Both the position numbers and the translations under genes were made by a program. From NCBI RefSeq assembly GCF_016433145.1, contig NC_058133.1, positions 195,801,243 to 195,864,088 of the forward strand: DNA of 62,846 nt. The letters run 5' to 3'. The stretch's first letter is position 1. Each line of letters begins with the position of its first letter. The stretch is from Gracilinanus agilis (Eukaryota). Under the pieces are notes generated by a model. That model saw only the letters and a program-made list of their open reading frames with translations, was not told where the DNA came from and did no database searches. Shown one piece after another: positions 865 to 16,621 of this stretch.

Positions 865-2784
865 GGCAGCAGCAGCTCACTGTCCAGAATGTTTCTGGGA
901 ACAACCTGACCATCAGTGGCCTGAGTCCTACACAGATTCAGTTGCAGATGGAACAGGCGCTGGCAGGAGAGGTCCAGCCTGGGGAGAAGAGGCGTCGAAT
1001 GGCTTGTACTTGCCCCAACTGCAAGGATGGGGAGAAAAGGTAATTCTAAGACAAGGTCTGGAGAGAACCTGGGCCCCCCACCCTGTGTCCCAGAAGGTTG
1101 GAGGCCCACTGGCTTGTTGTGGGTAACAGGACTCCCGGACCACATTTTCTCCATTTTCTTCCATTTTGCTCTGGCCTGGCCCTCTGCCTCATCTTTGCCC
1201 CCCCCCCCCCTGCCCTGCTCTTCCGGCCCTTTCTCCTATCTCATCTTATTCCCCCCATTCCATGCTTCTCCCTTGCTCCCTCCTCACACTTTCCCTTCTT
1301 TTTTTTCTACTTTCCTCCAAACCAATCTCTAGGTCTGGAGAGCAGGGTAAAAAGAAGCATGTGTGCCATATCCCTGACTGTGGAAAGACCTTCCGAAAGA
1401 CCTCATTGCTTCGTGCCCATGTTCGCCTGCATACCGGAGAGCGGCCCTTTGTCTGTAATTGGGTCTATTGTGGAAAGAGGTTTACTCGTAGCGATGAACT
1501 CCAGCGGCACGCACGGACCCATACAGGTCAGATCCCCAGCCTGGCCAATTCCCACCATTCCCATGCACCCCAGTCTTACTGTGCAGGGACCACATCAAGA
1601 GAGAGCCAAAATCTTGGGAGGAAGGGTGATTCAGTACAAAGGATCCAGGATCCACTCCTATCTCTGGCATTTGCCTTTATGACCTTGGGCAAGTCACTTA
1701 CCTTCCTTGTGCCTTAGTTTCTTCAGCTATAAAATGAAAGGGTTTAGCAAGCAGCTAGGTAGTACAGTGGATAGAGCACTGGGCATCTGATTTCAAAATC
1801 TGGCCTAAAGCACTTCCTAGCTGTGTAACCTTGGGCAAGTCACCCCAGTTTGCCTAGCCTCTCTCCCTTCTATCTTAAAGTCGTTACTAGGATAGAAGGT
1901 AAGAGTTTTTAAATAATTAAATGAAATGAAGGGGGTTGTACTTGACCTCAAAGATCTCTTCCAATTTTAATAAATCTATGATCCTATGATTTACTTTGTG
2001 AGGGGGCTGGAATTTGCAGGGGAAACTCTATAATTCATCTCTCTGTGCAGAGCTAACTTCTAGGAGAGTGCATGTACATGAAGTAGTCTTTTGGATAAAT
2101 AGAGGCCTGACCATTGGTAGGAGAGGGCACCAAAGGTGTCAAAGAAATGCACATTCACAAAATAACCTGGCCAGAATTGAGTACCAACTGAATATCTTAA
2201 GGGCTGATGAGATTAGAAAGAGGCAGAGTCAAAACTGGAAACATTTTCCTTCTGTTTTGAAGGAAAGGATATAGACTGGTAGGAAGCAGTTAGGAGGGCC
2301 CCATGCTAGACAGAGAGAATCATCCAGAAGCATGGACTCCAAAATGAACAAATCCTACACAAGGGATTTGGGAATAGATTAATTTGTGACACAAAAAATT
2401 TGTGTTGGGGACAAATAAGGTGAATTGAAGTGGCCTCAATGGCTGGATTGAACAGTTGGATTTGATATGATAAACAGTATTCCCTGAGCAGAGTCTCTAA
2501 AGCCAGTTTAACATCAGGGCCTGAAGTGGGAGCTGCATCTTCATTTGGGTGTTTGGGTCCTCTTCAACCATCTTACAACTTGCCTTTGGGAGATGAGCTC
2601 TATTGAGGAGCAGAATGATTTCCACCCGCACCTCTGGGTCTGGAGGGTAGAGTGCTGGGATGACAGGCCTCTCTTCTCTCCAGGTGACAAGCGTTTCGAG
2701 TGTGCCCAGTGTCAGAAGCGCTTCATGAGGAGTGACCACCTAACCAAGCATTACAAGACCCATCTGGTCACAAAGAATTTGTAA
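865..2784 (+). CDS. SP2: Transcription factor Sp2, last three coding exons (5' part lies outside the window)
   Basis: Exons 865-1039 ([57 protein letters not shown], Btd box), 1333-1526 (C2H2 fingers 1-2, [37 protein letters not shown]) and 2684-2784 (finger 3, [32 protein letters not shown]). All introns are GT-AG and phase-compatible. Confidence 0.97.
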
Positions 2785-5700
2785 AGTCAACAGCAAGCCA
2801 TTGGAGGCCCTGCAGATTCAACTCCAGTTCAGCCTGGGCCCCCTAGTCAGAGACACCATGGCTGATTCCTTGCCCCTTTATTCCCTGACTGCAGCCCTGG
2901 AGAGAGGGGCTTCAGTAACCATGTTTCCTCCTTCCTAAGCCATTTGGCTGCCACAACAGCCCCTCTTTCCTCCCCCATAAACTCCTGGCCCAGATCCCGG
3001 ACATTGGCCATGTACAATGAGACGTTCTAAACCAGGACGAATGGGAACCTTTATTTCCAAAGGAAAAACATGAATTTCACTCCGTCGAGGAGCCAAGTGA
3101 GAATCCCCTTCTTTTCTCCTCTCCCATCCCATAGCACTGATGTGGCCCAGGGCAGGGGAGCCAAAAAGGAGACACATCCCCCTTTGCTGCTGTCCTTCCT
3201 GTGGGGTCTGGCATACCCTACTCCCACCTGAGGGCAGCATGGCAGCAACATAAAGAACACTTGGGACATGGTCCCAGAGCCCCTATTTGAGGGCCACCCA
3301 CAGAGAAAGTGGGAAGGACACCTGCCTCCCCCCCCCAAAAAAAAAAACAAAAAACAAAATACTTTCTTCCAGCACATTCCAACTTTATATTTTAAATATA
3401 TATATAACCACAGACTCCTCCTGATCTTCCCTGTTTTTCTATGAAGAACGTTGCCTTATACTCTACTTCAGATAATGAACACTGTGTATTGTGTGCGCTT
3501 TTAAATAATTTTATTTAATTGCTCCCTTCTTCCTTTCCTTATTTTTCCTCTTCCCCCATTCCTCTTTTTCAGTTTGGGGTTGGTGGGGGTGGGTTTAGGG
3601 GGTTGTTTTTGTTTTTGTTTTGGACAATGATGAACAGAAAAACATTTTTTCTCTCCATAGACTTTTCACTTCTAAATAACGTAAAATTTCAATTTGAATC
3701 CAGAATCTGATTTTTTTAAAGAACCCTCACATACATACAAACATACTGTCCCTCCCCCTTCCACTTTTTTCTCATCCCATACCCCCACTCAGATCCTGTT
3801 TGTGTATAGTGTATATTGTATAATAGACAATATTGTGTCTACTACANNNNNNNNNNNNNNNNNNNNNNNNNNNNNNNNNNNNNNNNNNNNNNNNNNNNNN
3901 NNNNNNNNNNNNNNNNNNNNNNNNNNNNNNNNNNNNNNNNNNNNNNNNNNNNNNNNNNNNNNNNNNNNNNNNNNNNNNNNNNNNNNTTGGTCAGCACAGA
4001 GCTGGCAAAGAATTTTTTCTTGCTAATAAATTTAGTTGCCTAAGGCAAAGTCAGCAGCTTGGCAATGAGGCTTCCTTTTGTCTTTGTCTTGATGGAGCCA
4101 TGAGCTTCAGGAACTGGGAGAAGAGTGCCAGGGGAAAATAGGGCCCAGCCTCCTCATCTTTCTTACCCTCAGCAAGAATTCCCATCTGAACTTGTAGAAA
4201 GTTGGGTATTTCTATTCATGTGTCCAATTAACAGCAAAGTTGACTACTGTTGGAGATCCGTTTGGGTAGATGCTTCCATTTTTTCCTCTGTAAGCCAACT
4301 TTCCCCAGAGAAAAAATTGATACTAGAGAACCAGACCCTTCACAAGCATTGTCATCAGCGCGGTAATGGCAGGAGTGCAAGTCTCCTCTTGGGTGTTTTA
4401 TTTTTAAGAATCACTTGTATGAGAGTATGGAAGGTTATGAAAATAAGGAGCAAGTCTACCTGCATTTCCTTCCCTAGATACACAGAGGAGAGGGGCATTG
4501 GGCAGAGGCCAGAGAAACCCCTGTCAATGAACTTGGCTCCCTAATGGAACAGAGAGGCCCTTAAGGAGCTAGATCAAGGGTCAAGGTATAAGATGTTTTC
4601 CTTGTGGATAAAGACTCTAATTTGCCCAAAGAAGGACACAAACCCTAAAGATGTGCCATAATAGGGATGGGTCACCCTGAGCTATCTACACTCTTGCTCT
4701 ATTCCCTTTATCACCAGTATTTGCTAGTCTTCAACCTAAGAGCATGGAGGCCCAGTGGTATATGTTCATAGCTGTTGAACCCAGCTAGAGTCAGCAGACT
4801 GGTTCAAATCCCAGCCTCAGCTCCCACTAGCTATCTAAACAAAGATAAGCCACTTAATTCTCTGAGACTCAGTTTCCTTATGTGTAAAAGTTATCACTAC
4901 CTGCCTTGCAGGATTTTTTGTAAGGAAAGTACATCATATAAAGGAGACTGCTCTCTTTGTGACACTTAATTGTACCCTGAATTCATGTCCTAAGAGAATG
5001 TCCTCATGAGCTAGAGCCAATACCCATACCTACACCATTTTGTACAGCAGAAAAGAGGCTCCAAGCTCATCAGCAGTGAGGTCTATGACCCCAGCTGAGA
5101 CTGGTTACATGCTCTTCATCTCAATGCTTCCTTCATAATTGGCAGGGAGAGCCACACTGTAGCCACCCGGAGCTCAGGTTGTCCAAACTTGGACAAAAAG
5201 GCATTTCCATTTGGCAGAGAAAACTGTTAGGGACTCAAACATTGGTAGACGGGGGGCATCTGTCTTGTGTCTACCTTATTTTTCAAGACGGTAAGTTGCA
5301 GAATTGTTGTCTTGTCTGTTAAGAAAAGGGAGTTTCCTCACTGGGAACTCTCTTCTTTGATGAAAGCAAAGGTCCAAATACCATTTCCCACCCTCCCCAA
5401 TCCCCCAGCCCAAATGTGCTATACTATTTTGTTTAAAACACTGCCAAACTGTAGTGTCAAGGAACAAAGTAGTCTCTTTTTCGGCCTCAGCAGAAGGCCC
5501 CCGTTCCCAAGACTTTCCCCTAGGCGGCAGGGTTTTTCCCTTTCCCCTTCATTCCCCATAAGACAAGCATTCTTATCAAGAGGGAAAGGTGAAAGCCCTG
5601 CATGTCCTCTACCTGCAGTCTGAAGAGTGGAAACTTTGAGCCACACAGAACAGTCATGGCCAAAAGGCCATGTTTTACATGTTAATGATTCTATTCGGCA

Positions 5701-5886
5701 TGGGGGTGGCCTCGAGAAGACAATTCCCCTCTCTAGCTAGACCTCAGTTTCCCCGCCTGCAAACTTGGTCTAGGTTTCTAAAGCTCTTTCAAGCTCTAAA
5801 ATTCCATGGTCTAGAAAGGATGGAAGGATGTGGTAGGTTTAATCCAATCTTTATTTGAAATGTTCCGGCTTATGTACAAAGAAAGT

Positions 5887-5983
5887 CTATGAAGTCTTTT
5901 GGTCATGAATTTTGATTTCCAAGATAATATCTCCAAGATGAATGCAGAAGTTCCCACCTGCTCTGCAGACGGAGCCCTCCTCT
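5887..5983 (-). CDS. Candidate alternative terminal coding exon of the BEN-domain gene
   Basis: The acceptor gtctctcctgccag|A at 5983 matches the phase-2 donor GA|GTGAGT that overlaps the stop of the 6630-6521 exon. It would add EEGSVCRAGGNFCIHLGDIILEIKIHDQKTS*. A minus-strand AATAAA lies at 5850-5855. Confidence 0.5.
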
Positions 5984-6520: not shown

Positions 6521-6630
6521 TCACTCCATCTTTACAATCATCTTCTTGACTGCCCTCCTTGAGGTCCCACACTTGCTGTTGATGACGGCATTAAAGTTAC
6601 AACCACGGCCACACACCTTGGTGACATATT
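6521..6630 (-). CDS. BEN-domain gene exon: C-terminal part of the BEN domain
   Basis: Acceptor ccttttctgtcttccccag|AA, phase 1. Translation (E)YVTKVCGRGCNFNAVINSKCGTSRRAVKKMIVKME. Confidence 0.85.
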
Positions 6631-9600
6631 CTGGGGAAGACAGAAAAGGAAGCTGTTCAGATCTAGCTCCGAGCCAGGAGAAGGTGGAGGGGGTGGGCAA
6701 GAGTGCACTCCCAGGCTGACACAGCCATTCTGATCTAAGTTTGCAAGGGGAAGATAGCATTCAGTCTCCCAGACTCTCATCGCTGCCTATATTAAACCAA
6801 AATGCCTTGCTCTTCGGCCATGCCAATAGCTGGAACTGTAAGGAGGTCGAGGATCAGAGAGAGCTGGCATAGAAATGGAGAATTATGTCTTTTCCCCATT
6901 CCCTAAGACATGGCCCAGTTCTCTGCTTCATCACTACTAGAACCACAGCTGGAGAAAAGAATCAGGATGGGAAGGAAGAGAGAGATTGACAGATGGGAAT
7001 GCTTTTCAACTCTTCGATCCCATCCATCCCCATTCTCATGGCCCTGCATGTACCATCAGGGTCAGGGTCCTATCCTTAAAAGATTTACATCTTCCTTCAG
7101 TTTTCGTTCTGGATATTCCCATCAGTTATTTCTTCTCAGCTTTCTCGACAACCCTTCCTGCTTCATACTGGATACCACCCTGAACTTGAACTCTCCCCAC
7201 AATGTCCCTCAGCTTTCTATTTATTCTCTAGTTTAATAAACTCCAAAAGCAGAATTGCATCGATTGCCAAGGGACGGATAGTAAAAGAGTCACCATTTTC
7301 AAAAAAACAAGAATGTTAGGGCTTTAGGGCTCGGTAGAAAATAACTTCTCAAACTAAAAACCTAGATCTTCAGGCCAGTCTCCAAGGCCACTACTTTGTG
7401 GCCCCCTGCCAGAGAGAAGCCAACAGCACATACTACTCCACCCCTCCTCCTGCCTCAGTCACAAAACACTACCCTTGAGGGAATTTGCCCAAGTACCTTT
7501 GATGGCATTGACCACAGCAACGGGCAACCGAATGGGTTTCTCCATGGTAGTGTTATTATGGGCAATTCGTTGACCAGTGGCAGAGGAGCGGGCCAGCGTC
7601 TCCCGAGAGAAGAAGTAATCCAACATCCTCCTAGTCATCAGCTTGGGTTTGTCTGTTGACACCTGAGACAGGTCATCCAGCTGGTGGTGAGTAATGTAGA
7701 CCCCTGAGTTGGGGATTAGCTCTAGCTTGGGTCTCCCATTCTCCTGTGGAAGGGGGAAAGGCACTGACTGTTAGCCTGCACTCTAGCAGCCATCCTATTC
7801 AGCCTGATGTCACCGGAGGGTCTCTTCAGGACCCAGCACCCACAAGGTGTCTGGTCCTAGATGTTAAATGACTAACTTCTTCCAGGGCTCAGGATTCATT
7901 TCTCAGGCCCTGGGGAACCCAAACCAGCAGATAGAACTTCTAATTATAAATTTCATCCCAGATTCCCTTCTCATCATTTCAGATGTCTTGCAGGCAGGTT
8001 TGGAAGGAAAAACCTCCTCATCCTAAACCCTCTAGTCTGTAGGCACTTGACTACTCAGCCCATTCGTGAAAGCTGCAGGTTTCTTAGGAAACCCAGACTT
8101 ATCCCCTACCACTGAGTTCTACGTAACACCCACCTCCACAGGTGATGCCCATACAGGGGTTCCATCAGGCAATGTATCCTGAACATTCTCCTCCCACAGA
8201 CAGGTGGCCTCGCTCAGTGTAGCAGGACTGCCCACCCCATCCTCAGAGGTCAACCATGCTGGAAAGCCACTGGGGAGACCTGCTCGAAGCCTACGGACTG
8301 GTGGAGACCGTGGGGCCTCAGCAGGAGTTCCCTTGGGTTCCACGGGTGGTGATGTGGGAAGCTGTGCAGGAAGGCCATTCACCTGGAGAAGGAAGGGGGA
8401 GCAACTCTAAGCAAGGGAAGTAGCAGCATCTCAGCTTCCTGTTGTATCCCTTACAATGAAGGTTGGCAACCTCCCCCAAAGGCGCTGAAAATGTTCCCAC
8501 CAGTGCCAGGCCACTGGTGTCCCTGTCCCCTGTTAAAGGACAAACAAGGCAGATTACCCTTCTGGGAACATGCCCCCCACTTCCCTGAGGGTATCCCACC
8601 CCAGGCTAATTCTAGCTGGTCCCTCTGCTTCCAAAAGAATTGCCAGATCATATCCAAACGGCTGGATTCTCCTTCCTTTCCTCTGCCCTCCTCATCCTCC
8701 GTATGTGGGCAACCAAAGTCAGAAAGAGTTTGTGGGGAAGGTGTGAACTGTTCCCTCCTAAAGAGTAAGACCATCCCATCAACTTGAAAACCAAAATGGA
8801 CCACATAGTCTATGTTCAATGAACAGGCAGAAATGATATGCATTTTAACACTTAGCTCTATTATTTTGTATATTTGAGTGTGGCCTTCAGGAATCTAGGC
8901 ATCTAGATAAATATTTTTGACAGAAGCCTATCCTAGCATCCACCCAATGCCCAAGCTCCATCTGTGTCTCTCTCCCCAGGAGCTACCAGCTCATCAAGGA
9001 CCCACCTGTAGTGCCATGTTGCTCTCTAGTAGCCCCACGAGGCCCTTGAGAAACTGGATGTTCCCTTCATTGACATCTGAGAAGAGAGAGGCCACACCCA
9101 TGGGGATGGCTAAATGAAGACAGATGTGTTTCCAGGAGAAGGCTACAGCTGGATGTTGATAGGACTATAAGGACCTATTAGACTCCGGACTCAACCTCCC
9201 CACTCCCCAAGCATGAGTGCCAATAAGCCCACTCCCTTTCCCAAACTCCTCTTTCTGATGTTCCTTTTGTTATAAATCCTGGACCCACTGGAAGTGTCCT
9301 CCTGGGGAGCCCACTGCTAAGTAATGGGTCCTAGGGAAAAGGAGAGATGATGGTTCATCAGGACAGAGCCACCAGAGGACTTTTGAGGCAAAGATGACAA
9401 AGGGATCATATATAACAAAGTAAGGAGGGAGGACAGAAAAAAGTGGCAACTCTTGGTGAAGGGCTCCTTGGGGAGGGCAGAGCCTGAATCTGGGAAAGTG
9501 GAATAAGGAACGAGGGCTCAAACAAAAGGAGTGAGTGGAAAATGCAGAATTGGTAGAAGAAAATGAGTTTATAGAGAAGTTTGATGCCTGAGTAGGAAAG

Positions 9601-12378
9601 GGGAAATGGTTGAAATGGAAACAAAAGCAAAGCTGGCCAGAGATCACCAAGTCATCCAAAGGCAACTGAGGAGGGGCCAAATCCCCCTGGGAACCCTGGG
9701 GGAACCAGCCAGCCCAGCCTGAGGGATCCCCATCCAGCCACCTCCTGTCCATATCCCAGAGAGGACAGCTCCCGTTACCAAGGCTACTGGTCCCAGAGCT
9801 GAGGCTGGTGTTGGGAGAGGATGCTTTGAGCCCTGCACCACCTCGGGTGCTAGACAGCAGATCATTCTGCTCCTCTAGACTCCGCAGTTGACCCTTGAGC
9901 TGCTGATTTTCCAGCTCCAACTCTCGGATCCTCCTCTCTTGCCGTAGGGCTGCTTCTTCCCTAGAGACCAATAGCCTCCGAAGCTCTGCCATCTGTAATT
10001 CCAACTCCTTGACCAGTTCTGCATACAACCCGGTTACCTTGCCTCCTCCTGCAGCCCAAGGGCAGGCTCCTTCTGAGGCTAGGGGCTCTGTGCTTAAGGC
10101 CAGGGGCTCTGTGCTCAAACGGCTTAGAACAGGTGTGGGGTGGCACAGCCGGGCAATAGTGGGGCGAGCAGCCCTCAGGGGTTCCTGTGTCCTTGGAAAT
10201 CGAGTAGTGTCCTGGAGACCCCCAGGTCGAATGTCCAGGCTGCTGGTGCCACCACTTGGGAAGAAAGGAGCAGCTGGTAGATCTGGGACACTTAGTCCCC
10301 GTGGGAAGGGAGGACCAAGGTTTGGCCCATTGGTAGGCCATGGTCGCTTCCTGTTCTTGGCTTCTTCTTCTGGTGCTAGCAGTGGTGGGGGAGGCCTCCC
10401 CAGAGTCAGAATTCCCCGTGCTTGGACACTAGAAACAAAATACAAACCTAAGCCACTGGTAGCTGTTTCCAAAGCCCCAACCCAGGGAGAAAAGTATGGG
10501 AGAAAGTAGTGTATGATAGGGAAGACCTCCCTTGGATATTTCCACCTCCCGATTTCATCCAAATAAGGTACTAAAATGATTCTAGTTCTAGTTCCTAAGG
10601 CAACTCCTCCAGGATATTAGGGACTTGGATTTCTGGAGACAGGTAGGATGTCCATATCCCGGAATCAACCCCTCAGAAAATATATCAAGCGTAATCTCTC
10701 AGGGTCCAACTAAGAAGCGTGGCCCCAGTACAAGACAAATAGAGCCTGGAAGCTCCAGAAGACAAGGATTCAGGCCTTCACCAGGCCAGTGCCCAACACA
10801 AAGTAATGCTTAATAAAAGCAGTTTACATATAGTACCTCTTTCAAAGTCAATAAACATTTTTTGAATAGATATCCCAGTGTGTAAACCCTAGTGCTGGCT
10901 ACAAAAGGAAAATCAGAAGAGGGAGGTGTGATCCCTGACCTCAGGGACCCTTCAGTCTAAAAGGGGTGAGTGGGGTACCTAAGAAAGAGCAAGACAGATT
11001 TACAAAGCAATCTTCTAAGAGCTACATTTGTATAGGGTCACCACTATAGAAGGGGATGAGATTAAGAAAGGAGGAATAAAGGATCCATGCATCAAGGACA
11101 GGGCTAAGCCTAGTGATAGTCTTCACTGGGTCCCATCTAGGCCTAGGCCAGGTCTTAGAGTCAGACTCCTGGGTCTTCAGGCTTTTAAATTCCATCACCA
11201 GGAACCAGGCTTCTCTGCTGACATACCAAATAAGAATCTTCCCTGCCACTATCCTGATGCCATTGACCTTGGAATGGAAGTAAATGGTTTACCCAAGATT
11301 TAGACTCAATCTACCAATCTCCCCCCTTTCTCCAAACCTCCACAGTACTCAGGGTTTCAAAATTTATTCCTTTTCTCATTCTCTGATAACCATCTTTGGT
11401 GTATTGTATTTTATCATTAGCCTTACCCCTCAACTCTTTTGCCTTTATTTCTAACCATCCCACCGGGCTCTTGACCTCTAAGGGCAGTTACACTTTTCTT
11501 TCTGTCTCTCTCAAATATAGTCCAATCCTCATGATCCTCTCCCCTAGTGCGCTACAGCCCAGGGCTGATCAATGTGGCCACAAGAACAGAAAGTATGTCA
11601 CCTTGAGGTGTGACATCAACATATTGCTTATATCAGTACCAGTGGATTTTACAGGTGGGGATATATACACAGCAAGAAAGTTGGTACAGTAAACTCTCAC
11701 CACACTGACAAAAAGCTGTTTCACAGAAAATCCCAAATAGCATATAATCCATTATTTCCAGCGGAATGAACACTAACTCTGATGTCAGAGAACCCAGGTT
11801 TACATCCCAATGCTGACATTGCCTATGTGACCTTGAGCAATCCTCCCTGGGCCTCAGTTTCCTCATCCGAAAAATGAAGGAGGAATTAGACTGTATGGCT
11901 TCTGTGGTCCCTTCCAGCTCTAGGACCCTTTGAGGCCTTCTAGTGAATATATACATGCATATATATATATACACATATATATGTACACACATATTACACA
12001 TACATACATACATATGTAATTGGCAGAATTTCTCTCCCTGATGGTGTTGGCTCTGAAAATGTATCACCCAGAGTGCACAATGATGGCTGAGAGAAATCTG
12101 CATAAAATGGACTCTGGAGATTGACTATTCACTGTCTCAAAATATCAGCAAGAGGTCCCTTACCTGGCACACTCCAGGGACACTTGTCTTGGTGGCTCTT
12201 GGACCTCCAGTTCCTGATGCTGCTGAAAACTGGGACTGCACAGGGGACCCCCTCCCAGGGCAGCTTCAGGCAAGTCAAAGGTGGGATGAGCATCAGCTGG
12301 CTCTCCATTACCCAGTCCTGAGTCCACAGCCTGGAAGTGGCCTTGTAAAGCCACCCTCTCCCCGGCCCCCTCAGCCAT
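6521..12378 (-). CDS. Unnamed coiled-coil + C-terminal BEN-domain protein (NAC1/NACC-like BEN), about 513 aa, 6 coding exons
   Basis: Minus-strand coding exons 12378-12164, 10428-9779, 9076-9006, 8382-8134, 7743-7497 and 6630-6521. Every junction is GT-AG, the acceptors are pyrimidine-rich, and the phases match (2,1,0,0,1), giving one uninterrupted frame. It encodes a heptad segment (LYAELVKELELQMAELRRLL...LEEQNDLL) and a BEN-like domain (KLELIPNSGVYITHHQLDDL...RRMLDYFFSRETLARSSATGQR...VNAIKEYV...NAVINSKCGTSRRAVKK). Confidence 0.85.
7497..7743 (-). CDS. BEN-domain gene exon: core of the BEN domain
   Basis: Acceptor cctttcccccttccacag|GAG, donor AAAG|GTACTT. Translation ENGRPKLELIPNSGVYITHHQLDDLSQVSTDKPKLMTRRMLDYFFSRETLARSSATGQRIAHNNTTMEKPIRLPVAVVNAIK. 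Confidence 0.9.
8134..8382 (-). CDS. BEN-domain gene exon: Pro-rich linker
   Basis: Acceptor cccccttccttctccag|GTG, donor GAG|GTGGGT. 249 nt, phase 0-0, open frame VNGLPAQ...LPDGTPVWASPVE. Confidence 0.8.
9006..9076 (-). CDS. BEN-domain gene exon: 71-nt exon, too short for the ORF track
   Basis: Acceptor ctctctcttctcag|AT, donor CAG|GTGGGT. Phase 1 to 0 bridges the neighbouring exons exactly. Translation (D)VNEGNIQFLKGLVGLLESNMALQ. Confidence 0.8.
9779..10428 (-). CDS. BEN-domain gene exon: large exon containing the coiled coil
   Basis: Lies inside ORF 9270-10562. Acceptor tttgtattttgtttctag|T (phase 2), donor TTG|GTAACG (phase 1). Heptad-rich E/R/L/Q segment at about 9853-10028. Confidence 0.8.
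12164..12378 (-). CDS. BEN-domain gene: first coding exon (exon 12415-12164, ATG at 12378)
   Basis: Strong acceptor cgtttctctccttctcag| at 12415, cagATGG start, strong donor CAG|GTAAGG. Translation MAEGAGERVALQGHF...PPRQVSLECA. Confidence 0.75.
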
Positions 12379-13468
12379 CTGCTGGCACAGACCTGGGGAC
12401 CAGCCCCCGAGGCACCTGAGAAGGAGAGAAACGATGAATCTTAGCCCAGGTAGGAGGTCAAGACAGGGAAGTCTGCCGCACCACACACGGAACAGAACCC
12501 ATTCTGAGGAGCGTGATCTCAGTCAGCGAGGGGCAAGCACAAGCACCTACCTGGCTTACGGATGCCCCTGTGCCCGGAGGCTCCCCGCAGCCCCTACCGC
12601 CTCCTCCTCGAACCCCGGCTCAGTCCTCGGTCCTACAACTAACTTCATCCCCGGCGCCCTCCTGGCGCCAGCACTCCCTTCCCCCAGCCCGGCTCACCCC
12701 ATTACCCTGCCCCTGTCCCGGCTCTCCCCTTCCCAGACCCCTGAGCTGCGCTCTGCGGTTCCCTCTTCCCCTCCCCTTCCATGGGACGCCTAATCATCCC
12801 GGCTGCCCGGAAGATTGCTACCGCCCCCCACCACCACCGTGCCGTGTCCCCCAAAGTCCTCGGTCTGCTTCCCCCTCCCTTCTCCTCCCCTCCCCTCCCC
12901 AGCCCCAGACTCTGGCAGCCCCTGTACCTTTAACAACACCTCCATGTGCGTATTGACGGCAGTGACTACATTTCCTGGTCTCTTTGTTCCCGCCCCCTTC
13001 GGCGCTCCCCATTGGTGCCGAGGCTCTGTTTTTCCCGTTCCAATTGGCCCCGTTCCCGGAAGACTCAAGCCAATGACCTTTCCGTGTTGTTCCCCCGCTC
13101 CCCCGACCCTGGGCTCTCATTGGATTCCAGGGTGGGGGGCGGGGCCGGCGGGAGGTTAGACAAGTGACAAAACCCTCGGATTAGGGAAAAAGCGAAGGTT
13201 CGGAAGCTGAGTCAGATCTTGTCGCAGAGGTGGGAGAAGGAATTAAAAAAAACAAAAAGAGAGGGGAGTGGGGAAAGTGGGGGAGGGGCGAGGGCCGGCG
13301 GTTCTCGCGTACATGCGAAGAGGCGTCACATGGCCTTGCGGTCGCCATGACGACCCGACTTGGTAGCAAGGCGGGCCTCGCGCTGCGGGCGTCGTGACGT
13401 GTGAAACAGGCTGCGGGCTTGCGGGCAAGATCTCTTACCTCTGCTGCAGGTGTGCGGTCTGAGCGGTC

Positions 13469-16621
<3,153 letters not shown>

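Follow-up and report, generated by a model that had tools for sequence, protein, structure and literature searches.

Drosophila Insensitive and Elba1/Bsg25A and mammalian BEND5 and BEND6 work as dimers that repress or insulate in a sequence-specific manner, and poxviruses and polydnaviruses encode BEN domains as well. The BEN-solo factors (Insv, Elba1/2, BEND5 and BEND6) each carry a single C-terminal BEN domain with a coiled coil upstream, the rest of the chain being disordered, and in the NACC proteins a C-terminal BEN domain follows a dimerising BTB/POZ domain. In NACC1, the residues that contact DNA include R400, R401, G419, R421, R468 and R469 (PMC11472053). The total of nine BEN-domain proteins given in reviews is a count of human genes (PMC11472053). 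The gene described here, LOC123244460 of the marsupial Gracilinanus agilis, encodes a protein with the layout of a BEN-solo factor, in which a leucine zipper takes the place of the NACC BTB/POZ domain.

We analysed a window of 62,846 nt of G. agilis (NC_058133.1, assembly GCF_016433145.1, positions 195,801,243-195,864,088 of the forward strand), in which an intact six-exon gene had been predicted on the minus strand from the sequence alone. Splicing the six coding exons yielded a frame of 1542 nt, that is 513 codons and one terminal TGA. Exon 1 (12164-12378, 215 nt) begins at the ATG and encodes a disordered N-terminus; exon 2 (9779-10428, 650 nt) encodes a further disordered region, a KNRKRP motif and the leucine zipper; exon 3 (9006-9076) is only 71 nt long; and exon 4 (8134-8382, 249 nt) carries the end of a conserved helix, then a disordered linker and lastly a conserved LPDGTPVWASPVE motif. 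The BEN domain is divided between exon 5 (7497-7743, 247 nt; Pfam part 7638-7497), which supplies its N-terminal beta strands and first half, and exon 6 (6521-6630, 110 nt; Pfam part 6630-6569), which supplies the second half with helix alpha5 (NSKCGTSRR) and ends in the TGA stop (6523-6521). All five introns run from GT to AG with pyrimidine-rich acceptors, and the phases recomputed from the exon lengths (2, 1, 0, 0, 1) agree with the original prediction that the 71-nt exon bridges phase 1 to phase 0, a fit that far exceeds chance expectation.

The spliced protein was identical at 513 of 513 positions (100%) to residues 1-513 of RefSeq XP_044528895.1, the product of LOC123244460. The gene had been described as hidden, which it is not: NCBI annotates the locus in G. 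agilis itself and in no fewer than 11 further marsupials, and UniProt holds entries for the orthologs of Monodelphis, Sarcophilus and Vombatus. The BEN gene beside PNPO is annotated but unnamed, and nothing unannotated was found. The absence of a name held up, and so did the claim that neither human nor mouse has a named counterpart: the labels of all 107 relatives found read 'uncharacterized' or 'BEN domain-containing protein', and no eutherian is among them. A literature search under six LOC or Xenbase identifiers returned no paper on the family, and the literature on BEN-domain evolution and gene loss held nothing on it.

Where the six-exon model and the RefSeq model of G. agilis part is the 3' end. 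The RefSeq protein is 544 aa long (513+31), since a GTGAGT donor overlapping the TGA stop ends exon 6 at 6524 and a seventh coding exon is added (5887-5983, minus strand), and an AATAAA lies at 5855. The exon-7 reading frame terminates differently in Monodelphis, so its peptide is poorly conserved, and most other marsupial records stop at the same place as the six-exon model (509-513 aa). An alternative 3' splice site (TTTAG; 9077-9109, minus strand), 33 nt upstream of exon 3, inserts eleven in-frame residues, AIPMGVASLFS, which are annotated in isoform X1 of Monodelphis and Sarcophilus and in a variant form in Vombatus. At the other end, the MAEGA... start is common to the marsupial orthologs, and the tetrapod and coelacanth orthologs begin at the same alignment position.

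The predicted combination of a coiled coil and a BEN domain was borne out by both profile and structural model. In the full-length RefSeq protein, the BEN profile PF10523 scored 44.2 bits (E=2.3e-11; gathering score 23.2), with profile positions 2-76 of 76 aligned to residues 431-498, and exon 5 alone scored 32.9 bits. BEN was the only Pfam domain above threshold in the full-length protein, and a BTB/POZ domain was detected by Pfam in neither the single exons nor the whole protein; upon alignment with NACC, its BTB region likewise had no counterpart. Searching folds with the AF2 model of the whole protein (mean pLDDT 53.8) turned up noise, with nothing at E<=0.001. In the predicted structure of a shorter isoform, built from a more diverse alignment, the BEN domain reached a pLDDT of 91-98, and the top 16 Foldseek matches of this model in the PDB were all BEN structures (target TM 0.68-0.84), among them Insv (4ix7, TM 0.83) and Bsg25A (4x0g, TM 0.82-0.84). 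The BEN fold, consisting of N-terminal strands and a five-helix bundle, is thus present in the model.

The closest characterised BEN domains, by sequence and by fold, are those of NACC1/NACC2 (NACC1 BEN-DNA structure 8yzs), with 29-33% identity to NACC1 in structural alignment; the BEN-solo factors, at 14-23%, lie below detection by the family profile. In a PDB sequence search, the family profile matched the NACC1 BEN structure across the whole domain (E=6e-12). NACC1 and the LOC123244460 family have in common a KLEL..G..VYIT motif in the N-terminal beta strands, an arginine pair in alpha2, a G-x-R loop with the minor-groove arginine and a second arginine pair in alpha5. The six NACC1 contact residues listed above align, in that order, with R433, R434, G452, R454, R502 and R503; across 37 orthologs these vary hardly or not at all, with the exception of R434, which is Lys in one shark. 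By analogy with NACC1, each BEN domain would insert alpha5 into the major groove, and Arg454 would enter the minor groove.

Other contacts differ. The base-reading D462 of NACC1 corresponds to an invariant Ser in the family, though R469 and R421 are kept, and of the backbone contacts, S423 is replaced by Ala and R429 by Glu, the alignment around R429 being ambiguous owing to an indel. With D462 changed to Ser, S423 to Ala and no basic residue aligned to R429, CATG specificity is not to be taken for granted, and judging from the invariant Ser the family's motif is probably not the CATG of NACC1. The Asp and Ser found at this position of alpha5 would offer a natural comparison for studying how NACC-type BEN domains choose their motifs.

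Upstream of the BEN domain, the protein is laid out as a disordered N-terminal half, a zipper of ~65 residues, a short conserved helix and a disordered linker. The N-terminal half contains the basic motif KNRKRP (aa 96-101; also written KRKRP), a possible NLS. The zipper, which lies within exon 2 (9852-10037, minus strand; aa 203-264), was modelled by AF2 as a single 66-residue helix (202-267, pLDDT about 96), with L242, L249, L256 and L263 at d positions and I239, N246, L253 and N260 at a positions; the four leucines and both asparagines are invariant in 37 orthologs. It therefore shows heptad leucines over at least four heptads together with Asn at a, the pattern of a parallel leucine-zipper dimer. 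Since GCN4-type parallel dimers have Asn at an a position, and this zipper has it at two, we infer a parallel homodimer, which would offer two BEN domains to DNA and would read a specific, probably dyad-symmetric motif. The sub-threshold Pfam matches of the full-length protein were to coiled-coil families, of which KASH_CCD and TRIM_CC were taken as generic coiled-coil similarity; the same applies to a PDB match to the coiled coil of hepatitis delta antigen, for which homology was rejected. A second conserved helix in the AF2 model (aa 292-313) begins in exon 3 and ends in exon 4.

The original prediction placed the gene between SP2 and PNPO, and both neighbours were located in the window. The last coding exon of an SP-type C2H2 zinc-finger gene (1166-1714, plus strand; Pfam zf-C2H2, 49.5 bits), which is SP2 as assigned by synteny, lies tail-to-tail with the BEN gene, and PNPO starts at an ATG at about 13469 on the plus strand, divergent from the BEN gene ATG at 12378 (minus strand). 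Between the divergent starts lies a CpG island (12250-13750; GC 0.60-0.65, CpG o/e 0.42-0.85), a probable shared bidirectional promoter. The head-to-head order with PNPO was also found in 8 other species, from shark to opossum, and an SP-type neighbour, where the locus extends far enough, in alligator, possum and plover, the alligator contributing synteny only and no splice reconstruction. The PNPO linkage dates to the jawed-vertebrate ancestor. In human, the lncRNA SP2-AS1 is annotated at the same position, with a differentially methylated region shared with PNPO (PMC10403495).

The exon structure proved as stable as the neighbourhood. An independent splice reconstruction from annotated proteins found no change of exon length in Monodelphis, Trichosurus and Sarcophilus, bar one in-frame 12-nt difference in exon 2, with GT-AG at every junction in the four marsupials, and in catshark, plover and caecilian the phases recurred, as did exons of exactly 71 nt and 247 nt; exon 5 is 247 nt long in every species examined. 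In the marsupial alignment, the exons were gap-free and better conserved than the indel-rich introns, with 97-99% identity in exon 6 and 99% identity between exon 2 and that of Monodelphis LOC103101315. Orthologous marsupial exons contained no frameshifts, and dN/dS among marsupials was 0.065-0.108 overall; in the coiled coil and the BEN domain it fell to about 0-0.02, and in the zipper to 0-0.01. On these counts, and on the BEN profile match, the original prediction withstood the refutation tests proposed with it. From sharks to marsupials, the BEN domain has stayed nearly invariant, and helix alpha5 is the most conserved segment in the whole protein. Moreover, a 1730-bp RNA-derived contig of the frog ortholog (SRR5149490) carries an uninterrupted spliced CDS. 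To summarize, LOC123244460 is a functional single-copy protein-coding gene under strong purifying selection.

A profile search collected the 107 orthologs from marsupials, reptiles, birds, amphibians, the coelacanth and sharks; across annotated proteomes and ORF fragments, none came from a placental, a monotreme or a ray-finned fish, and Gallus was not among the matches listed. HMMER, run exhaustively against 1.84 billion representatives, returned only 75 hits, in which the orthologs came first, followed by mollusc, brachiopod and echinoderm proteins and then by NACC1/2, and BEND5/6 were absent from these 75 at E<=0.001. A group of weak matches in the tail, made up of 'ELVPGYGVY...' fragments, was left unassigned. 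The best non-vertebrate matches (E 1.7e-27 to 1e-9) were uncharacterized BEN proteins of Argopecten (XP_069137448), Lingula (LOC106173933), Gigantopelta, Sinanodonta, Mya and Apostichopus, which share the signatures SSAxGxRxAHN and INSKCxTxRR, the latter as (V/I)INSKCATxRR, with the vertebrate family, and those of Lingula and Gigantopelta also have a short zipper and an I/F-x-FL-x-x-L helix upstream. They differ in being shorter (193-432 aa), in having an insertion before alpha5 and in being only 21-37% identical overall. In a tree of the LOC123244460 family, its invertebrate relatives and NACC, the vertebrate family received 95/99 support, separate from NACC at 100/99, and the invertebrate proteins formed a polytomy with NACC. 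The invertebrate proteins and the LOC123244460 family are probably one bilaterian family. The gene tree agrees with the species tree, each genome having a single copy.

Taken together, these data are best explained by an ancient chromatin or transcription factor with a single BEN domain, dimerised by its leucine zipper and binding DNA sequence-specifically, of which no placental, monotreme or ray-finned members are annotated, a reading to which we assign a probability of roughly 0.7. Its role, by analogy with the BEN-solo proteins, would be that of a transcriptional repressor or a chromatin-boundary factor. The most serious competitor, though an unlikely one, is a functional protein that does not bind DNA sequence-specifically, its BEN domain and zipper serving as a scaffold, for instance for corepressor recruitment or non-specific chromatin binding: some BEN domains bind DNA weakly or need partners, a Ser stands where NACC1 has its base-reading Asp, and the helix at aa 292-313 and the conserved WASPVEENGRPK motif have no assigned role. 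Against this stand the retention of the NACC1 DNA-contact arginines at 5/6 positions, their invariance or near-invariance, bar R434, over more than 400 million years, and the fact that it is alpha5 that is conserved above all else. A third vertebrate BEND5/BEND6 paralog, for example a CBF1/Notch-pathway corepressor like BEND6, is considerably less probable still; it would share the architecture of a coiled coil with a C-terminal BEN domain, and BEND6 BEN structures appear among the fold matches at ranks 15-16, but the exhaustive search reached NACC1/2 and neither BEND5 nor BEND6 at E<=0.001, the PDB profile search retrieved NACC1 and no BEND6 even at E<=1, and identity in structural alignment was 14-17% for BEND6 vs 29-33% for NACC1.

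Two readings of the locus itself fare worse. Because some viral proteins carry a BEN domain (PMC11472053), a recent domestication from a transposon or virus could be imagined, and we give it very little credence: the gene keeps its position, its orientation and all five of its intron positions from catshark to opossum, the single-copy gene tree tracks the species tree, and the family signatures extend to the invertebrate relatives, so that the conserved locus, introns and tree refute any recent event of this kind. A mobile-element origin before the bilaterians would leave our reading unchanged. The idea that the frame arose by chance, belongs to a pseudogene or lies in a non-coding antisense transcript of SP2, with no protein function, draws on the fact that the locus overlaps nothing named and that its human position is occupied by the lncRNA SP2-AS1 (PMC10403495); it deserves next to no weight, being refuted by dN/dS of 0.07-0.11 with no frameshifts in four marsupials, by an exon structure that shark, bird and caecilian share, phases included, by a BEN domain nearly invariant across jawed vertebrates, and by the spliced frog mRNA.

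The locus reveals a further BEN family, kept under very strong constraint in most non-placental jawed vertebrates and apparently missing in placentals; on the reading favoured here it would be the tenth BEN gene family of vertebrates, apparently lost in placentals. Loss in placentals, monotremes and ray-finned fishes would account for the missing name, and the lack of an annotated placental counterpart is probably why the gene has been neither named nor studied; should the gene be missing from human, mouse, zebrafish, fly and worm, that would explain why so constrained a gene has gone unstudied. A real loss would offer a clear-cut example of a DNA-binding factor that, for all its deep conservation, was dropped when placentals arose. 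With the mouse apparently lacking the gene, Xenopus (LOC495228, XENTR_v10003673) and the laboratory opossum are suitable for its study, and chicken possibly too, provided that it has the gene. NACC1 and NACC2 lie at other genomic locations. A fuller scenario, which we put forward tentatively and rate at slightly under even odds, is that of a tenth vertebrate BEN family, a bilaterian-age, ultra-conserved, zipper-dimerised NACC-type factor with an alpha5 frozen for more than 400 million years, lost in the placental stem, independently in ray-finned fishes and possibly in monotremes, and decaying in falcons, SP2-AS1 being its transcriptional relic. In falcons, R454 is replaced by His and R502/R503 by Trp-Trp, at positions that are invariant elsewhere, and indels are found in addition.

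Joining six minus-strand segments of the window (12378-12164, 10428-9779, 9076-9006, 8382-8134, 7743-7497 and 6630-6521) yielded 1542 nt that encode 513 codons and one terminal TGA, as expected from the six-exon GT-AG frame of the original prediction, and every intron opens with GT and closes with AG preceded by a pyrimidine tract. The exon lengths (215, 650, 71, 249, 247 and 110 nt for exons 1-6) give intron phases 2, 1, 0, 0 and 1, and so the 71-nt exon does carry phase 1 to phase 0, as had been proposed. None of the four N runs of the window (3847-3986, 30711-31090, 56964-57143 and 62071-62202; 140, 380, 180 and 132 bases) overlaps the gene, the closest being 3847-3986. The gene and its domains were correctly called, but the claim that it was hidden fails, as the locus is already in RefSeq as Gracilinanus agilis XP_044528895.1 (544 aa, "uncharacterized protein LOC123244460"), residues 1-513 of which are 100% identical to the predicted protein. 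When a longer stop-free ORF containing exon 2 in frame was used as a homology query, with only the exon portion scored, the best match was Monodelphis domestica "uncharacterized protein LOC103101315" (99% identity), followed by marsupial, turtle, tuatara, alligator, bird, amphibian and coelacanth proteins.

The two protein lengths reflect a consensus splice donor, GTGAGT (G|GTGAGT), that overlaps the TGA stop (6521-6526), an overlap kept in four marsupials. From this donor the RefSeq model reaches a seventh minus-strand exon (5983-5887), which replaces the stop by a 31-aa tail. Since the stop is where most marsupial records (509-513 aa) terminate, and the exon-7 peptide ends in ...KTS in Gracilinanus versus ...KTFHRLSCI in Monodelphis, the 513-aa form is the conserved one. 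A C-terminal extension is also found in amphibian orthologs (...IRIDWMEGGGQ...). In addition, an alternative in-frame acceptor located 33 nt 5' of the 71-nt exon (9077-9109, minus strand) adds AIPMGVASLFS. Isoform X1, as annotated for Monodelphis and for Sarcophilus, has the identical insert, and Vombatus has a variant of it, indicating that this acceptor is conserved across marsupials.

Splice structures of other species were rebuilt by exact match from annotated proteins. The same six exons were recovered in Monodelphis, Trichosurus and Sarcophilus, the sole length change being an in-frame 12 nt in exon 2, and catshark, plover and caecilian share the six exons and their phases, including the exact 71-nt exon 3 and 247-nt exon 5. 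Across the marsupials compared, exons aligned without gaps whereas introns were rich in indels, with intron identity 7-20 points below that of exons against Trichosurus and Sarcophilus and 2-8 points below against the much closer Monodelphis. Whole-CDS dN/dS (Nei-Gojobori) was 0.065-0.108, and, by region, it reached 0.12-0.17 for the disordered N-terminus but 0-0.01 for the coiled coil and 0-0.02 for the BEN region. Furthermore, a 1730-bp contig assembled from frog run SRR5149490 holds an uninterrupted 491-aa ortholog CDS and is a spliced mRNA. These sequence comparisons show a genuine gene that is constrained.

Its surroundings are conserved as well. The ATG (12378, minus strand) lies 1.09 kb from the start of PNPO (~13469, plus strand), with a CpG island (12250-13750) between the two divergent starts, and the window further contains, on the plus strand, an SP-type C2H2 zinc-finger exon (1166-1714) and CDK5RAP3 (55335-55874). 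PNPO is head-to-head with the gene in Trichosurus, Monodelphis, Sarcophilus, alligator, plover, caecilian and catshark, and the SP-type gene is tail-to-tail with it in possum, alligator and plover, bearing out the predicted position between the two; in plover, CDK5RAP3 and ATAD4/PRR15L also follow at the locus in the order expected. CDS-to-CDS spacing to PNPO is ~0.9-1.6 kb in other tetrapods and ~9.3 kb in catshark. A bidirectional promoter probably serves both genes.

The predicted architecture, a coiled coil plus a BEN domain, was recovered. A Pfam scan of the full-length protein covered the whole BEN profile (PF10523, 44.2 bits; encoded by exons 5 and 6) and found no second domain above threshold, BTB included. 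AlphaFold modeled the N-terminal 200 residues and the linker as disordered, a long helix at 202-267 (pLDDT ~96), a second helix at 292-313 (pLDDT ~86) and, from an alignment of greater diversity, the BEN domain at pLDDT 91-98; the best 16 Foldseek matches were all BEN domains (NACC1, Insv, Bsg25A, BANP and BEND6). The long helix is a classic leucine zipper, with L242, L249, L256 and L263 at d positions and I239, N246, L253 and N260 at a positions, the leucines and asparagines being unchanged across 37 orthologs. Parallel dimeric zippers, GCN4 among them, are marked by asparagine at a positions.

The NACC1 BEN-DNA structure places helix alpha5 in the major groove, with D462 and R469 as base readers and R468 on the backbone; R421 enters the minor groove, and further backbone contacts come from R400, R401, S423, R429 and the main chain of G419-I420 (PMC11472053). 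We mapped these contacts by profile alignment, after verifying on every contact residue how far chain index and residue number are offset. R400/R401 (R433/R434), G419 (G452), R421 (R454) and R468/R469 (R502/R503) are conserved, whereas D462 (S496), S423 (A456) and R429 (E463, an uncertain mapping owing to a nearby indel) differ. From this partial retention we infer that the BEN domain would dock on DNA as in NACC1 with a different base preference. The zipper would bring a pair of BEN domains to a dyad-type site, and, if NACC and the BEN-solo proteins are taken as analogues, the protein may act as a repressor or boundary factor.

A profile built from 15 orthologs matched 107 proteins in the named database, all titled "uncharacterized" or "BEN domain-containing protein", in agreement with the prediction of an unnamed gene. 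Their hosts are marsupials, turtles, crocodilians, tuatara, squamates, many birds, frogs (including Xenopus laevis LOC495228 and X. tropicalis XENTR_v10003673), salamanders, caecilians, coelacanth and six sharks; no placental, monotreme or ray-finned fish protein was among the 107. Gallus and passerines were not among the birds listed, and this absence in birds could reflect real loss or an assembly or annotation gap in a GC-rich microchromosome region. The final ~125 residues are nearly invariant from coelacanth to opossum. No paper mentions the gene under the identifiers searched, and it is an unnamed, unstudied BEN-family member.

An exhaustive HMMER search of 1.84 billion representatives returned only 75 matches: after orthologs and exon fragments came uncharacterized scallop, brachiopod, gastropod, mussel and sea cucumber proteins, then NACC1/NACC2 (1e-6 to 1e-5), and BEND5/6 were absent. 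The invertebrate proteins carry the family signatures SSAxGxRxAHN and INSKCxTxRR, whereas the NACC equivalents differ (NSCGTGIRSSTND and AADMCTNARR). A BEN-domain tree supported the vertebrate family (95/99), NACC (100/99) and a lophotrochozoan group (88/87) without resolving the order among the three, and within the vertebrate family it matched the species tree, with very short branches. The search tail held about ten short ORF fragments (P0165, P0167, P0168, P0171, P0174, P0176, P0180, P0184 and P0187) of the type ELVPGYGVY(L/I)T..QLD…SPTKLIRNL…FF…LA.SSA.G.R, covering only the exon-5 part of the domain at 37-53% identity. Three of them form a separate group in the tree, and the fragments as a whole may represent another unnamed BEN family.

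In three falcons (Falco naumanni, F. biarmicus and F. peregrinus; proteins P0111, P0117, P0125 and P0206) the BEN domain, otherwise invariant in birds, carries R454H, R502W and R503W, all at otherwise invariant arginines that map to NACC1 DNA contacts, and two single-residue deletions, and one isoform is frameshifted ahead of it. Such replacements of Arg by Trp or His are a typical outcome of CpG decay, and the falcon sequences look like relaxed constraint or loss of the putative DNA binding, with lineage-specific decay by CpG-type changes.

Annotated proteomes and ORF fragments, the material covered, point to an apparent loss of the gene in placentals, which together with its conservation elsewhere makes it moderately interesting. 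A human methylation study assigned a single 530-bp region to both PNPO and the lncRNA SP2-AS1 (PMC10403495), in keeping with a non-coding transcript that diverges from the PNPO promoter in the place of the opossum BEN gene; SP2-AS1 might hypothetically be its relic.

The caecilian Rhinatrema bivittatum ortholog (P0017) bears the NCBI title "cyclin-dependent kinase 12-like", a name apparently prompted by tandem copies of a proline-rich repeat (ADVREPPILPPP and variants) that enlarge its exon 4 to 576 nt (12820-13395 of the caecilian locus, L006); the protein lacks a kinase domain and is simply an ortholog. In salamanders, the orthologs carry a different large repeat insertion ahead of the zipper.
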